A DNA stretch of 64,000 bases, from positions 204,503 to 268,502 of the forward strand of contig NW_005434601.1 in NCBI RefSeq assembly GCF_000315625.1. The letters run 5' to 3'. Both the position numbers and the translations under genes were made by a program. Under the pieces are notes generated by a model. It was not told the origin of the DNA. It ran no database searches and saw nothing but the letters and a program-made list of their open reading frames with translations. Shown here one piece after another: positions 5,843 to 62,422 of this stretch (position 1 is its first letter; every line of letters begins with the position of its first letter). This DNA comes from Guillardia theta CCMP2712. Taxonomy: Eukaryota; Protista; Cryptophyta.

Positions 5843-6476
5843 TATTGACTAAAAGTTTATTGACTGACGCAGTGAAACTTGAAGAAAAGGCAGCTCACGG
5901 TACCTTATTTGTATTCATCAATTGGATAGTACCTTTTTGTTGATGGGGGTGGGCTGTCTGGTTTGAATTTTTGTACCAGAAATGATTCTTGAGTAATTAC
6001 ATAAAAGTTGTTTTTGAGATATCAAGTTTTACCGTGGCACTGGCCCGAGTCGGCCGGGATCCTCCGAGTCACAACCCCTCCCGCAAATTGTTCGCCAGCC
6101 GTGTATGGCAGGCTTCCCCTCCCCGCCCCTCCAACCATCCCTTCAAGTCAGGCTTCCTCCCCGCCCCTCCCGGTCTCGGATCATCGCTTATTTCAGGTTG
6201 GCACATCGGACGCTCCTCAGCTTGTGCTTTGTGGTGACTCAGCTGAGTCTGAGGACGAAGAGGGGGTCTTTCCTAGCCGTCTTGCTAAGGTCCTCTCATG
6301 TCTGGATGCTTGGGTTTCACATCCTAGCATACAGTCTATCTCTCATGTGCTCCTCAATTCTGGTTTTGTGTGCATTAAACTCGGTCTTGAGCAAAAACTG
6401 TCTTGTTACAACTAAGGTCGATGTGATATCTGCGTGACTTTGGACTAGTACAAGTCTAACAAACTTGTATTCCGTC

Positions 6477-6487: not shown

Positions 6488-7358
6488 TCGATTACATGCT
6501 CAATCATGTTGATCTTATATTTGGTTAGTTGAATTGTTTACTGGAGTTTTTTCTTTCTTGGTATTGTTTTCCCGTTGCTGTTGAAAATTCATGCAAATTC
6601 TATCAAGCTTTACACATTCGGATGACTCCTCTCTTCAATCAGGCTCTCTTTCTAGCCGCAAGTTGTTTAGGCCTCTCATCTCAGCCTCAATTTGTTTGAT
6701 TGATCTTCGAATTGGAAAAACAAGCCTTCCCCAGCCAGATTGGTCGGTCGAATATCTGCTTAACCGTGTGGAAACGCACTTGAAGCTGATTCGATTTTAA
6801 TCTTCTTGATCTTTGAGTAGGATCAAATGGAACTACCAGGAGATCTGGCGGAAGTTTTCATGTCATGGAGCTAGGCTGTGGCATGCATAACTGGAGCTAC
6901 TTCTGGATCGGCGAACAAGGTACTACTGCACAACAATCTTCAGATGCCTTGAAACGGATGTTCCAATCTCGCGGCAGCAATCTCTGGTCACAAGTTCTTT
7001 ACGGTTCAAAATTTATCTTTTGGTCTTCAAATGCCGGCGGGCACGCTCTCTCTCTCTCTCTCTCTCTGTTATCTGAACTCCGAAGTTCTCTCCTCAGACT
7101 CTCTTATCTTATCCTCCTTCTCTCGTCATTGCATCAGCTCGCCAGGCATCTCCCTTATCTCTGCACTGCACATCTAATAGCCCTGCATGAAAATCTTCTT
7201 CAGAATGGACAATCCTTGAATGGTTATTGCCCACTCAGCATGACTGTGAACTTGACGTTGTATCATCGTATCTTGACTTGGATCTGCTGACATTCTCTTG
7301 GTTGAGTGACTTTCTGACGTCCGATGTAACGTACTATTTCAGAAACTCGGGGGGAGGA

Positions 7359-7684
7359 TGGAACGTATGCCAGCCGTGCCAGTCAGATAGCGCCGAGTTA
7401 ACAAAAACTCTCCTGTAAACCAAGACGACTTACCGTGGCAGGCGGCCAATGTAGCGTATGGGACGAAGAGGGGGTCTTTCCTAGCCGTCTTGCTAAGGTC
7501 CTCTCATGTCTGGATGCTTGGGTTTCACATCCTAGCATACAGTCTATCTCTCATGTGCTCCTCAATTCTGGTTTGTGTGCATTAAACTCGGTCTTGAGCA
7601 AAAACTGTCTTGTTACAACTAAGGTCGATGTGATATCTGCGTGACTTTGGACTAGTACAAGTCTAACAAACTTGTATTCCGTCA
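7359..7684 (+). repeat. Complete 3' LTR (326 bp, TG...CA)
   Basis: Starts with TG just after the polypurine tract and ends in GTCA; shares 223 bp with the 5' copy. Confidence 0.8.
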
Positions 7685-8793
7685 GAGTCACTGACTGAAA
7701 GTTAAATTAAAAATCATAACGTTGAGTCTGACCCCGGCTGACACCGGGCGTCTGTCGCACAGGCTGGCCAAACGACGAGCCTGACTCGCTCGGAGAAGAG
7801 AAAACTCGGACAGCGAGAACCAAACCCAATCCTGCCGACTGCTGTCCTCCAAACTTAGCAGCCTTCCTCGACTCTCCTGATTGTGTTGAGTTCTAATGAT
7901 AGCCCGGCGCTGCTCGGAAGTTCAACGGTAGGCCCGGCAAAGTTGGACCGTACGGTCACGTACGGTATGAGGGGAATTAATGGGAATGTAGCATGTGTGG
8001 GGAATGATGGGGGTGGGGTGGGGTAGGGTTCAAAAATCTGAAATGGAGAGACAAAATGGTGGGTAATTTTATGGAATATTGGGGGTAGGGGTACTTGGGA
8101 CCCACGAGCGGTAGAGGAGGGGTCCTTGAGTCTTGATCGGCCTCCAGTCGATATGAGATGGCCTCGCAGTTGGAACAGGGCGAAGAGGAGGAGGGAGGAG
8201 GAGGGGAGGAGGAGGGGAGGAGGAGGAGAGGAGGAGGAAAGGAGAGGAGTGGAGAGGAAGAGAGATGAGATCAGAGGAGAAGGACGAGGAGAAGAGGACA
8301 TGGAAGGGTCAAACAGGTATGAGGTGAAGGGAGATATGATGAGACTTTGAGAAGAAGGATGTGAATAGTTGCGATGATAGAAGATGAGATATGAAGGAAA
8401 GAGATGTGCTTGATTGTCATGAAGAGGAAAAACAAAAGTGAAGTGAAAGTGTTTGTTGACTAGGACAAAACGTATTGGAATAGACAACAGTTGGTTGAGT
8501 GCCATATTTTACTTGGATAAGTCATTCGCAAGAATGGCTGACAGCTGCAGCAGGAAAGTGAAAGGCGACTGAAGGACGAGAACGACTCACATAAAGACAC
8601 AAGGAGTGAAGGAACAGACTTCACATCATCAGGAAGCCGGACGAATCTGGGGTGTCAGCAGAGTTGCTGAGCTGAAGCCGTGCATGCCTTGCTGACATGC
8701 CGCTCAATCTCTCGCGCGGGAGCTCGCTCATCGCTCAGCTCTTCCTTCTCGTCTTCTCTTGCTTGTTCTGGGAGATCAGACCAGAGATCGGCA

Positions 8794-58806: not shown

Positions 58807-61800
58807 ATGTTCCTCTTGCGATCAGCTGCTGTTGCCTCCTTCCTGTTAGCGTGCGGTCTCCCCTACTCATCTGCCTTCGTCGGCAGCGGACTCACTGTCA
58901 CGCCCAAGGGTGAAAAACTTTTCCCTTGCTCCTGTCTTCCTGCCTTCCTGCCTTCCTGCCTTCCTGCCTCCTTCCATCCTCTCTACCTTCTCCCCTCTGC
59001 TTGATTGCTTCTCGTCTCCTCTCCACTTTGATTGCTCCTCCTGTTCCGGCCGATCTGTTGCTTCAACACCCTGCTTCGGGCTTCCTCGTCTCATCCTGCA
59101 GCGCATGCCTCCTGATGTCCGCCAGCAGATGCTCGTCTCAGGACGGCTGTTTCAGCGACTGCGTCCCGTTCCACTCCGCTGGGGCTCAAAATGGAGGATC
59201 CTCTGCTCCTGAGAGCAGCCAGGGGGGAGAAGGTGGAGATGACACCGGTGTGGATGATGAGGCAGGCGGGCAGGCACATGCAGGCAAGCAGGCAGCGTGC
59301 GAGGTCGCAGCTCACGGGGGATGGCAGGAGTACCGGGAGCTCGTGAAGAAGTACCCTACCTTCAGGGAGAGGTCCGAGATACCTGAGGTCGCGACGGAGA
59401 TCTCCCTGCAGCCGTGGGAGGCGTACGGGGTGGACGGATGCATCCTCTTCTCCGACATTCTCACGCCCCTTCCTGGGATGGGTCAGTGGGCCATGGCGGG
59501 AAGGAGGATAGAGGAGGGGAAAGGGAGGAGGAGGAGGAGGAGGAGGAGGAGGCAGCCCGACTAACCAGGAGCAGGTGTGGAGTTCGACATCAAGGAGACG
59601 AGCGGGCCGAAGCTGAAGCCCCTGAGGACGAAGGAGCAGATTGACACGATGAAGATCTGCTCGGACTGGTCCACCTCCATGCCCTTCGTCAAGCAGACCC
59701 TCGGAGAGCTGCGCAAGAGGGTTCGTGCTTCTCCTCCTCGTCCCTTCCTCTGTGTCTCCTTCTCCTTGTCCTCAAGCTCCCAACCTGATGCTGAGGCCAT
59801 GCTCGCGCAGGTGGGAAACTCGGCGACTGTGCTGGGGTTCGTGGGCCTTCCGTTCACTCTGGCGACCTACTTGGTGGAGGGAGGAACCAGCTCTGAGTAC
59901 CTCGAGATCAAGAAGATGATGTGAGGGAGGAGAGGGGAGCGGCGCAGGAGCAGCAGGAGTGATGTGGCTGCTTGTTCAGGTACTATAATCCCTCCCTCCT
60001 CACGGCCATGCTGGAGAACCTTGCCGAGAACATCGGAAACTACGCGAACTTTCAGATCGAGGCCGGAGCTCAGGTGAGGAGAGGGAGGGGGAGGAGGGGA
60101 AAGGGAGATCAGGCAAGCAGGCAGGCTGGAGGGGAGGGAGGGAGGGGCGGGAAGGCAGGGAGGGAGTAGGGAGGCTCATTTGATGCGTCTGCCCAGGTCA
60201 TCCAGATCTTTGACTCTTGGGCGGGCTCTCTGTCCCCCGAGGACTACGACCTCTTCGCCTTCCCGTACCAGAAGATGGTTGTCAACGCCATCAAGAAGAA
60301 GCACCCTGATGTATGCTCCTCCTCGCATTCCTCCCCAGCACCACAGCCTCTACCACTCCCCTTCCTCTCCTCCTCCTCGNNNNNNNNNNNNNNNNNNNNN
60401 NNNNNNNNNNNNNNNNNNNNNNNNNNNNNNNNNNNNNNNNNNNNNNNNNNNNNNNNNNNNNNNNNNNNNNNNNNNNNNNNNNNNNNNNNNNNNNNNNNNN
60501 NNNNNNNNNNNNNNNNNNNNNNNNNNNNNNNNNNNNNNNNNNNNNNNNNNNNNNNNNNNNNNNNNNNNNNNNNNNNNNNNNNNNNNNNNNNNNNNNNNNN
60601 NNNNNNNNNNNNNNNNNNNNNNNNNNNNNNNNNNNNNNNNNNNNNNNNNNNNNNNNNNNNNNNNNNNNNNNNNNNNNNNNNNNNNNNNNNNNNNNNNNNN
60701 NNNNNNNNNNNNNNNNNNNNNNNNNNNNNNNNNNNNNNNNNNNNNNNNNNNNNNNNNNNNNNNNNNNNNNNNNNNNNNNNNNNNNNNNNNNNNNNNNNNN
60801 NNNNNNNNNNNNNNNNNNNNNNNNNNNNNNNNNNNNNNNNNNNNNNNNNNNNNNNNNNNNNNNNNNNNNNNNNNNNNNNNNNNNNNNNNNNNNNNNNNNN
60901 NNNNNNNNNNNNNNNNNNNNNNNNNNNNNNNNNNNNNNNNNNNNNNNNNNNNNNNNNNNNNNNNNNNNNNNNNNNNNNNNNNNNNNNNNNNNNNNNNNNN
61001 NNNNNNNNNNNNNNNNNNNNNNNNNNNNNNNNNNNNNNNNNNNNNNNNNNNNNNNNNNNNNNNNNNNNNNNNNNNNNNNNNNNNNNNNNNNNNNNNNNNN
61101 NNNNNNNNNNNNNNNNNNNNNNNNNNNNNNNNNNNNNNNNNNNNNNNNNNNNNNNNNNNNNNNNNNNNNNNNNNNNNNNNNNNNNNNNNNNNNNNNNNNN
61201 NNCCAGGCTCCCTGACTGCCTCTGTGAGCCTAGCGGATCGGACCGCACTCGGAGTCACCCGGCCGCCGGGTCACCGCCGGGCGGTGACCGGCGTGTGGCC
61301 GGCAGCCGCCGGCCCAGCCTCGGAAGTTCAGGCTCCTGTAAACCAACTTCGGACGACTTACGTGGCGAGGCGGCCAATGTAGCGTGTGTCTTGCTAAGCC
61401 TCGGTCCTCTCATGTCTGGATGCTTGGGTTTCACATCCTAGCATACAGTCTATCTCTCATGTGCTCCTCAATTCTGGTTTTGCCAGCCTGAGTGTGCATT
61501 AAACTCGGTCTTGAGCAAAAACTGTCTCAGGCTTGTTACAACTAAGGTTGATGTGATATCTGCGTAACTTTGGACTAGGACGTCGGAACACGGTGATGGC
61601 ATCGGGAGTCCGGGAGTCCCGGCCGCCGGCCCCCGGAGGCTCAGGGCACGTTGGCCTGCCCGGGCGCGGTTCCGGCCGGCTCCTCCTCCTCCTCCTCCTC
61701 CTCCTCCTCCTCCTCCTCCTCCTCCTCCTCCTCCTCCTCCTCCTCCTCCTCCTCCTCCTCCTCCTCCTCCTCCTCCTCCTCACAGATCCGTCAGGTCCCC

Positions 61801-62422
61801 ATCATCATCTACATCGCTAAGTCTGGGGCACACGTGGAGCGCATGGCCGACACTGGGGTTGACATCGTCTCGCTCGACTGGACCGTCACCATCGACGAGG
61901 CTCGTCGGAGGATCGGCAGAGACGTAGGCTGGTGGGGAGGAGCTGGGAAGGAGCTGAGAATGTTGGCAGATCGGCCTTCAGGGCAACCTCGATCCGGCGA
62001 TCCTCTACGGCCCCGAGCACATCATCAAGGAGCGCACAGAGAGCATCCTGAAGATGGCTAAGGGAAGGTGAGAAGTGTGTTGTGAGGAGGAGGAGGAGGA
62101 GGAGGAGGAGGAGGATGAGGAGGAGGAGGAGGAGGAGGATGAGGAGGAGGAGGAGGAATGGGTGGAACGTGAACGAAGGAAGGAGTGAGAGAGTTGACGG
62201 GGAGCGGAAAGGGAGGAAGGGTAGAGGGGATGCAAGTGCATGATGAGATGAGCGGGAGGAGGGAAGGAGTGGAGAGGGAAAGGAGAAGGTGGGAGGGAGG
62301 AAGGGATCTAAAGCGAAGGACGCAGGCATCACATCATGAACCTGGGGCACGGTATCGAGGCCACCACACCTCAGCCCAACGTGAAGTTTTTCGTCGACAC
62401 AGTGCACGCGTTCAAGCACTGA
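58807..62422 (+). CDS. hemE: Plastid-targeted uroporphyrinogen III decarboxylase
   Basis: [69 protein letters not shown]; N-terminal signal peptide ending SSA-F followed by a transit-like peptide. Confidence 0.95.
61333..61578 (+). mobile_element. Degenerate LTR fragment of the same family as 7359-7684, inside a hemE intron
   Basis: Collinear with 7410-7655; flanked by GC mosaic tracts 61203-61332 and 61579-61680. Confidence 0.9.

Follow-up and report, generated by a model that had tools for sequence, protein, structure and literature searches.

Four short insertions in a truncated long terminal repeat (LTR) of Guillardia theta are probably, at odds that we put near 0.6, the scars of a break-repair process that acts in place and provides each 3' end with a C and an inverted copy of its flank. 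The insertions lie near one end of the window, the whole 64,000-nucleotide stretch of DNA that was analysed, and the rule that they follow was examined across the copies of the same LTR in the genome. The sequence of an insert is set by its own flanks and reads as flank, a C or G pivot, and the reverse complement of the flank. Such a signature is apparently absent from the literature searched.

The LTR fragment and its setting

By virtue of its alignment to sister copies, the fragment at the centre of this work is a truncated LTR. It belongs to a small, TRIM-like family of LTR retrotransposons, of which the nuclear genome of Guillardia theta holds at least 176 copies (Table 1). Copies of the family are paired about 1.2 kb apart as direct terminal repeats around an internal region, the polypurine tract GGGGGGAGGA precedes the 3' LTR of a family element, and the LTR ends, which are of the TG...CA type, read ..GATGGAACG and ..TTCCGTCA. 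The complete 3' LTR within the window, a natural copy, was taken as the coordinate reference, and events were polarised by this copy together with their frequency among copies, no consensus being built. In reference coordinates the fragment spans positions of about 55-303 of an LTR of about 330 bp, so that both termini are absent. A search of its flanks for residue of the LTR ends gave no signal (z = -1.0 and 0.4), and the idea that the GC-rich flanks are an overwritten remnant of those ends was rejected on this ground. Fragment and flanks are placed within an intron between two uroporphyrinogen decarboxylase exons, and no match to the structured RNA families of Rfam was found in the window.

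Apart from its insertions the fragment has changed little. As the initial annotation had described, there are few substitutions, about 2-3 being private (for example T at 61549 and A at 61566, where nearly all other copies have C and G), and a deletion of 27 bp, which overlaps deletions of 11-21 bp in copies L003, L004 and L028. Two 1-bp indels that had been assigned to the fragment belong instead to the copy at 7.4 kb, since the family majority agrees with the fragment.

Table 1. Coordinates in the window of the LTR copies, the insertions and the neighbouring features.
Feature	Positions	Strand	Basis or remark
5' LTR (5'-truncated) of the same element as the next row	6253-6476	+	
Complete 3' LTR of a small LTR element of about 1.5 kb	7357-7684	+	
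Uroporphyrinogen decarboxylase exon	60194-60313	+	Pfam PF01208, E=5e-11, profile positions 200-239
Assembly gap, 823 N, directly adjoining the 475-bp block	60380-61202	.	
GC-rich (75%) flank composed of odd palindromes that pivot on C or G	61203-61332	.	
Truncated LTR fragment	61333-61578	+	Aligned with sister LTRs and with 108 copies from the genome
Insertion 1, CTTCG	61347-61351	+	AA-C-TT joined to TC-G-GA; arms share one T
Site of 27-bp deletion relative to the family	61388/61389	+	
Insertion 2, CCTCG (= GCCTC)	61399-61403	+	AG-C-CT plus C-G-G
Insertion 3, CCAGCCTGAG	61483-61492	+	TG-C-CA, then CAG-C-CTG and CT-G-AG
Insertion 4, CTCAGG	61526-61531	+	Full symmetric scar CT-C-AG-G-CT, 2-nt target duplication
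GC-rich (77%) flank of the same kind as 61203-61332	61579-61676	.	
(CCT)n microsatellite	61680-61781	+	Similarity to C45 stops here
Next uroporphyrinogen decarboxylase exon	61783-61923	+	Pfam PF01208, E=3e-8, profile positions 238-280

The four insertions

All four insertions that the initial annotation had reported were recovered by alignment. About 108 other copies of the LTR in the genome lack them, and they are therefore derived in this copy; the converse, that the extra bases are the majority form of the family and were deleted from the copies at 6-7 kb, is rejected by the same count of zero. Two of the sites have been used more than once. Insertion 2 recurs independently at the same position (reference position 141) as GCCTC in C7:115942 (L043), and its sequence is also contained in a 13-bp insert of copy L075. 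The site of insertion 3 is a hot spot where five other copies carry different inserts (reference positions 219-225) and where reads reveal yet another copy with a different insert. Within the fragment, the sequence at 61485-61492 returns as its exact reverse complement at 61526-61533. Likenesses of this kind (CCTGAG to CTCAGG, and CTTCGG to CCTCGG) had been read as a vocabulary of stereotyped oligonucleotides supplied from outside, but they follow from the flank-pivot-inverted-flank rule. The 7-8-mers common to the inserts of the fragment and its upstream flank (AGCCTCGG and CCAGCCT) are not significant under a Markov null (P=0.14).

The insertion rule across the LTR family

The rule was tested on 117 private insertions of at least 3 bp in 109 LTR copies (about 33 kb). 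An arm was defined as the reverse complement of the flank beyond one pivot base and was scored when it reached 2 nt or more. Such an arm is present on the left of 60 insertions, on the right of 58, on either side of 84 and on both sides of 34. With shuffled inserts the expected numbers are 16.5 on the left, 17.1 on the right and 5.5 on both sides; with inserts permuted among sites they are 13.2, 12.9 and 3.6, respectively, and 22.5±3.9 for either side. Pivots of 0 or 2 bases are not enriched among the 117 insertions (for a zero-base pivot, 13 on the left and 16 on the right were observed against 15.5 and 14.8 expected), and classical P nucleotides and a two-base spacer were rejected for this reason. 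In about 80% of cases the pivot is C, and its use is strand-symmetric, with C in 47 of the 60 left arms and G in 46 of the 58 right arms. Full symmetric scars were found with targets of 1-3 nt, as in TCC-C-GGA-G-TCC, TTG-C-CAA-G-TTG, CTC-C-GAG-G-CTC and ACA-C-TGT-G-ACA. Target duplications among the scars measure 0, 1, 2 or 3 nt, with many scars having none. In 33 of the 117 events no arm of at least 2 nt is present, and 45 have one arm alone; either the one-base-pivot rule is incomplete, or scars are compound or eroded.

The inserted bases have further regularities. Insertion lengths peak at 4-5 bp, a peak at 5-6 bp having been predicted, and GC makes up 61% of the inserted bases but 47.5% of the LTR; private 1-bp insertions comprise 12 C, 10 G, 5 A and 5 T. 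Tandem duplication was considered as a source and set aside, as it accounts for only six of the 117 events, all of them 3-mers. The earlier description of the inserts as non-duplicative thus stands for direct duplication of the flank but not for inverted copies, which surround a single pivot base. Templates at a greater distance appear to contribute little: inverted matches of at least 7 nt within ±80 bp number 8 against 2.4 expected, a modest excess that is inflated by the immediate fold-back arms, direct matches within ±80 bp are not enriched, and templating within ±300 bp is not enriched relative to other loci.

Frequency and distribution of events

Private events in the LTR family comprise 170 substitutions, 175 insertions and 71 deletions, and the insertion process is as frequent as base substitution in this family. 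An insertion-biased and rule-bound process, as first suspected from the sequence alone, is borne out by these counts. The insertions are strongly over-dispersed among copies: 62 of the 109 have no private insertion of at least 3 bp, while a single 330-bp copy may hold up to 7 events. The paired LTRs of one element are identical at integration. Members of the pair L079/L080 now differ by two inserts and no substitution, and the pairs L057/L058 and L092/L093 each differ by four inserts and three substitutions; several other pairs show no insertion difference. Since the two LTRs of a single element can differ by inserts, the process acts on DNA in place. The correlation of insertion load with the GC content of the flanks is weak (rho 0.21), and there is some correlation with substitution load (rho 0.31). 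No polarity of scars towards the GC-richer flank was found (27 versus 19 events, p=0.30), and with the weak correlation this leaves the idea that scars spread inward from that flank unsupported and lends no support to a connection with the growth of the GC-rich tracts.

The process is general, being neither repeat-specific nor sequence-specific in the bases that it adds. Both GC-rich flanks of the fragment are non-repeat DNA and hold odd palindromes with a radius of at least 4 in excess, the upstream flank having 6 against 1.08 expected (P<0.002) and the downstream flank 4 against 0.92 (P=0.01). One of them is a perfect 21-mer (61269-61289) centred on the G at 61279. Even palindromes are not enriched in these flanks.

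A model of break repair and its relatives

The enzymology that we propose is inferred from the form of the scars, and this applies to the break as well as to the hairpin or fold-back, the source of the C and the joining by microhomology. The process would begin with a double-strand break that is blunt or has a stagger of 1-3 nt that is filled in. Each 3' end may then gain one C and become linked to, or copy, its own complementary strand. The result would be a hairpin with C at its apex, and opening it a few bases away would leave the inverted flank, preceded by C, as a 3' tail. One side of a scar would accordingly read as the intact flank, the extra base and then the 1-5 flank bases nearest the break in reverse complement. 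Read on the strand that points its 3' end at the break, the extra base would be C, and C is thus predicted on the left and G on the right. The two tails would be joined by microhomology where the additions overlap or pair, and 1-3 target bases would often be duplicated to give the full form T-C-rc(T)-G-T. Over repeated rounds the DNA could grow longer and richer in GC and come to contain odd palindromes. Simple self-priming across a loop of one base is sterically implausible, and a covalent hairpin or a template jump must therefore be assumed. A target duplication that varies from 0 to 3 nt requires breaks with a variable stagger.

Two known repair reactions resemble the model. In SD-MMEJ snap-back, as in the Guillardia theta scars, short inverted copies of break-adjacent sequence arise, the two ends behave independently and joining is by microhomology. 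Snap-back, however, depends on an inverted primer repeat that is already present, and a loop, usually of a few to 25 nt, remains between the arms, whereas the arms of the scars described here abut across exactly one inserted base and need no primer repeat. In yeast, the local foldback inversions that form at an HO-induced break (PMC11724301) share with the scars very short templated inverted duplications, of 5-34 bp, and the synthesis of one end with capture of the other by end joining. They rely, however, on a natural inverted microhomology of 10 bp with a 41-nt loop, and are rare repair products rather than a dominant germline mutation class.

Competing explanations

Short-range template switching during replication, in which no double-strand break occurs and the growing strand takes the complementary or nascent strand as its template over a few bases before it returns, is the foremost competitor, though an unlikely one. 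Such switching is documented in human and ape genomes, where it gives rise to new hairpins and to reverse-complement copies of nearby sequence (PMC5453318, PMC7954356), and the inserts described here are likewise inverted copies of adjacent bases. The four-point model of switching (PMC5453318) copies exactly, however, and predicts no untemplated pivot or extra base per turn, and its events are rare, unclustered singletons below the frequency of substitution. Switching would also require C to be added at the first turn and G at the second, while a two-ended break needs a single rule of one C per 3' end. End joining also accounts better for overlaps of the microhomology type between left and right additions, of which insertion 1 is an example.

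Somewhat less probable again are the excision footprints of a cut-and-paste DNA transposon. An element with ends of the form 5'-C...G-3', a target duplication of 2-3 bp and flank hairpins that keep one terminal base at the apex would yield T-C-rc(T)-G-T, which is exactly what the full symmetric scars, with their duplicated targets and constant C and G pivots, display. It is established that MULE, hAT and Transib elements leave hairpins on the DNA that flanks them (PMC5499845), and the genome holds at least six MULE-like transposase matches. The P nucleotides of these hairpins (PMC5499845), like those of V(D)J joining, arise when hairpin-sealed ends are opened off centre; they too are palindromic, have the complementary strand of the same end as their template and are followed by end joining, but they form even palindromes that directly abut the flank, unlike scars with an extra C at the centre. 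The target duplication of the scars has no fixed length and is often absent, while those of MULEs measure 8-9 bp. Moreover, no unexcised element or DNA-transposon insert was found in the 109 LTR copies (about 33 kb, 175 private insertions), in which events cluster in some copies and spare many. Searches of the genome for CACTA and hAT transposases gave no match, which is weak evidence, as they were silent in control genomes too.

The initial annotation favoured a repeat-directed insertional mutator or defence against transposable elements that adds stereotyped GC-rich oligonucleotides in the manner of RIP. In its favour are an insertion frequency equal to that of substitution in the LTR family and the strong over-dispersion among copies. 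RIP is a C-to-T substitution process directed at duplicated DNA. The Guillardia theta process shares with it only an unusual mutation load in repeated DNA; it inserts bases, and private substitutions have no dominant class. It also follows the local flank in place of a fixed vocabulary, spares most copies, including both members of several pairs, and marks non-repeat DNA with the same odd palindromes. A mutator of this kind is therefore very improbable.

A last concern is the assembly itself, as the 475-bp block comprising the fragment, its GC-rich flanks and all four insertions lies at the edge of a gap. The block is repeated at C45:~513899-514373 with 99.4% identity, and the two versions differ at three positions. 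Contigs from public runs X1 and X2 cover 61203-61381, including insertion 1, without mismatch, and carry an extra C that is typical of the C45 version. The confirmation in reads that had been proposed was thus obtained for insertion 1 and in the C45 version only; placement of the block beside the gap in the window is unconfirmed. These contigs break at repeats and palindromes, and their absence across insertions 2-4 is no counter-evidence. That the insertions are an artefact of assembly or sequencing, as the adjoining gap and the C45 form of the contigs might suggest, can practically be dismissed, because a second assembled locus with three differences has all four, independent contigs reproduce the first exactly, and a single sequence rule, which no known sequencing error gives, holds for more than 100 further events spread over dozens of loci. 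Doubt is confined to placement in the window; the insertions themselves are beyond doubt.

Implications for genome evolution and annotation

Returning to break repair with an added C, it is conceivable, if speculative, that Guillardia theta has a distinct end-processing pathway, with either hairpin caps that have a single C at the apex or a C-adding, template-jumping polymerase, followed by reopening, and that its product would be a deterministic scar of flank, C and inverted flank. Such a pathway may be a major source of germline mutation that lengthens DNA, raises its GC content and builds palindrome-rich GC tracts. If it is a defined repair pathway, its signature would be insertion-biased, GC-increasing and palindrome-creating at a rate comparable to that of substitution. 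It would then offer a concrete mechanism for the growth of non-coding DNA, introns and GC-rich tracts in a cryptophyte, as well as a natural source of new hairpins, and the field of DNA repair would take an interest in an enzyme that adds C and turns the strand. As regards annotation, Guillardia theta repeats that appear "diverged" can be young copies inflated by scars, and the dating of repeats by divergence is misleading for that reason.

The target LTR fragment and its family

As assembled, the target LTR fragment is located inside an intron of a uroporphyrinogen decarboxylase (URO-D) gene, since the exons on either side match consecutive parts of the PF01208 profile. It is placed between an assembly gap and a (CCT)n microsatellite, and its coordinates are collected with those of the other features in the table below. 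The URO-D introns are dominated by long purine-only or pyrimidine-only tracts of the (CCT)n, (GGA)n and GGGAGG type, and in several further kilobase bins of the window the composition profile is extremely skewed in GC and in AT.

In the 87.1-Mb, 669-contig assembly that was searched, where the window is G000:C73:204503-268502, a 36-mer from the target's LTR occurs 176 times with at most 3 mismatches. The family is a small, TRIM-like LTR retrotransposon whose copies, with LTRs of ~330 bp ending in ..GATGGAACG and ..TTCCGTCA, come in pairs spaced ~1.2 kb and enclosing an internal region with a polypurine tract at its end. All that the target retains is reference positions 55-303, as counted on the 7.4-kb LTR of the window's own element, and no residue of LTR ends was detectable in its flanks. 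Same-family LTR copies also occur nested or head-to-head, from a few bases to ~140 bp apart, as local rearrangements. RNA-seq reads (2026 run) match the family with the first mate mostly on the + strand; they stem from other copies, without the target's insertions. Because 99 of these reads run into poly(A) past ~61521 (reference position ~250), the LTR family is transcribed and polyadenylated within the LTR, at an R/U5-type boundary.

Coordinates of the target, its insertions and related features (window positions unless a contig is named)
Feature	Position	Remarks
5'-truncated LTR, window's own element	6253-6476	
Full LTR, window's own element	~7357-7684	
URO-D intron	59930-60190 (purine- or pyrimidine-only tracts)	
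URO-D exon	60194-60313	PF01208 profile positions 200-239
Assembly gap	60380-61202	823 N
Non-repeat flank	61203-61332	odd palindromes of radius >=4: 6 vs 1.08 expected, P<0.002
Perfect 21-mer palindrome	61279 (centre)	centre G
Target LTR fragment	61333-61578	
Insertion 1, CTTCG	61347-61351	AA-C-TT and TC-G-GA, one T in common
Hot spot, reference positions 127-141	~61389-61404	
Insertion 2, CCTCG	61399-61403	AG-C-CT then C-G-G
Hot spot, reference positions 216-233	~61478-61500	
Insertion 3	61483-61492	TG-C-CA, then CAG-C-CTG and CT-G-AG
Insertion 4, CTCAGG	61526-61531	CT-C-AG-G-CT, full scar
Non-repeat flank	61579-61676	odd palindromes of radius >=4: 4 vs 0.92 expected, P=0.01
(CCT)n microsatellite, URO-D intron	61680-61781	
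Next URO-D exon	61783-61923	PF01208 profile positions 238-280
URO-D intron	62070-62320 (purine- or pyrimidine-only tracts)	
Nested or head-to-head LTRs, L110	G000:C183:65000-66000	
Nested or head-to-head LTRs, L038/L039	G000:C4:892079-893075	
Nested or head-to-head LTRs, L080	G000:C116:38563-39263	
MULE-type matches	G000:C25:383473, C367:7636, C11:495834, C41:417501, C154:102001, C105:246459	

Insertions across the family

A set of 109 LTR copies was fetched and each was aligned to one natural copy (window 7356-7686), the polarity of an event being judged by the number of copies having it in common. The four insertions and the 27-bp deletion are placed in the target as the initial annotation had described; the two 1-bp indels it had also listed are actually private to the 7.4-kb copy. 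The insertions are absent from every other copy except a near-identical block on contig C45, and the extra bases are therefore derived rather than the family form.

Private GC-rich insertions of 3-19 bp, accompanied by few substitutions, are found in many further copies (e.g., L029, L040, L043, L050, L075, L085, L086, L092/L093 and L107). With private events defined as those present in at most two copies, there are 170 substitutions, 71 deletions and 175 insertions, of which ~116-117 are at least 3 bp long (mode 4-5 bp). Inserted bases are 61% GC versus 47.5% for the LTR. An element integrates with two identical LTRs, yet mates differ by 2 inserts and 0 substitutions in the pair L079/L080 and by 4 inserts and 3 substitutions in each of L057/L058 and L092/L093; the events therefore took place after integration, on chromosomal DNA. 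At the hot-spot junctions several copies have independently acquired scars, some alike and some different; for example, reference position 141 has five events and the interval 219-225 has eight.

A single-base pivot rule

The 117 private insertions of at least 3 bp were tested, with alignment slide allowed, for a reverse-complement copy of the left flank directly behind a first inserted base that acts as the pivot, and for the mirror image on the right. Shuffled inserts and inserts permuted among sites served as controls. Left arms of at least 2 nt were observed in 60 events (16.5±3.6 shuffled, 13.2 permuted) and right arms in 58 (17.1±3.7 and 12.9); 84 events had such an arm on either side (22.5±3.9 permuted) and 34 on both (5.5±2.2 and 3.6). 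In the same set there was no excess for a zero-base pivot, as in classical P nucleotides, or for a 2-base pivot. The pivot is C in 47 of the 60 left arms and G in 46 of the 58 right arms, which is one strand-wise rule: a 3' end gains C and then an inverted copy of that end.

Complete symmetric scars, T-C-rc(T)-G-T, make up 18/117 events, with a target (T) of 1 nt in ten, 2 nt in four and 3 nt in four; a few have A or T instead of the usual pivot base. Scars with a target triplet are thus a minority form within a broader pattern. Both arms without symmetry are seen in 15 other events, one arm in 45, no arm in 33 and tandem duplication in 6. The rule is deterministic enough that identical inserts arise independently at one site: the target and L043, which have no other event in common, both contain GCCTC at reference position 141, and L075 has it within a longer insert. 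The shared vocabulary reported for the inserts (CTTCGG/CCTCGG, CCTGAG/CTCAGG) is explained by constant C/G pivots combined with local templating. Within the target, reverse-complementing bases 61485-61492 of insertion 3 gives exactly 61526-61533, which insertion 4 produced; one was therefore probably copied from the other.

Break repair as the preferred reading

For a process whose sequence rule, strand symmetry, target duplication of 0-3 nt, action in place and rate are established, the preferred reading (probability about 0.6) is break repair in which C plus an inverted end copy is added at each 3' end. The starting point would be a double-strand break, either blunt or with a stagger that is filled in; every 3' end would receive a single C and be linked directly to its own complementary strand. 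One route could be a hairpin that has C at its apex and is opened a few bases from it, another a template jump following C addition. The tails would then be united by microhomology; with a duplicated target on both ends, the inverted tails would be complementary and give T-C-rc(T)-G-T directly.

Inverted local copies are likewise made by P-nucleotide addition after hairpin opening, by snap-back synthesis in SD-MMEJ (PMC5728401), by foldback inversions at an HO-induced break in yeast (PMC11724301) and by short template-switch mutations (PMC5453318). Flank hairpins have been demonstrated for MULE, hAT and Transib elements (PMC5499845). The Guillardia scars differ from all four sources of inverted copies in their obligatory single-base, mostly C pivot and abutting arms, and none of the four has been reported as a germline mutation class matching substitution in frequency. 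The process is classed with templated inverted insertion at breaks, as a variant set apart from described forms by its pivot rule. A search of the literature on Guillardia palindromes, insertions or retrotransposons found nothing relevant.

Template switching during replication would likewise produce inverted copies, but it does not explain why one turn should have C and the other G; it is considered an unlikely source of the inserts. Somewhat less likely still is that the scars are transposon excision footprints: the symmetric scars would fit, but the target duplication varies in length, the events are clustered, and unexcised elements are absent from the 109 LTR copies. Separately, the genome has six MULE-type transposase domain matches that are nearly identical, with an open frame of 114-142 aa in each; they look like a small Mutator-like element family or domesticated copies.

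Repeat and non-repeat DNA

The initial annotation had proposed, as one option, that a dedicated process adds stereotyped oligonucleotides to repeat DNA. This repeat-directed mutator is now highly improbable: 62/109 copies have no private insertion of at least 3 bp (23 have three or more), and the target's non-repeat flanks too are enriched for odd palindromes, which pivot on C or G. Even palindromes show no enrichment in those two flanks. Across the 109 copies, insertion load and flank GC are weakly correlated (rho 0.21, p=0.03), and insertion load and substitution load are correlated at rho 0.31. Given the weak GC correlation and the lack of any polarity of insertions towards the GC-richer flank in the LTR family, a possible spread of GC tracts into neighbouring DNA is not supported by this family.

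Read support and the C45 block

The whole 475-bp block at 61203-61676, consisting of a GC-rich flank, the scarred LTR fragment and a second GC-rich flank, recurs at G000:C45:~513899-514373 (L002) with 99.4% identity; 2 mismatches and 1 indel separate the two copies. The similarity may continue into the N gap of the window. In two public 2011 runs of one sample, contigs match 61203-61381 with no mismatch, insertion 1 included, but carry the extra C after 61217 of the C45 version; insertions 2-4 are spanned by no contig, and a 2021 run has both flanks in the C45 version only. The scars thus exist in DNA, while the block's placement beside the gap is unconfirmed by reads; an artefact is the least probable explanation of all. 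Either the block was recently copied as a segment, or it has been misplaced at the edge of the gap. The DNA directly 3' of the 7.4-kb LTR (window 7686-7750, AGAGTCACTGACTGAAAGTTAAATTAAAAATCA...) resembles, in inverted orientation, L002 ~1240-1300, near the C45 block, and the likeness may reflect a further unclassified repeat family tied to both loci.
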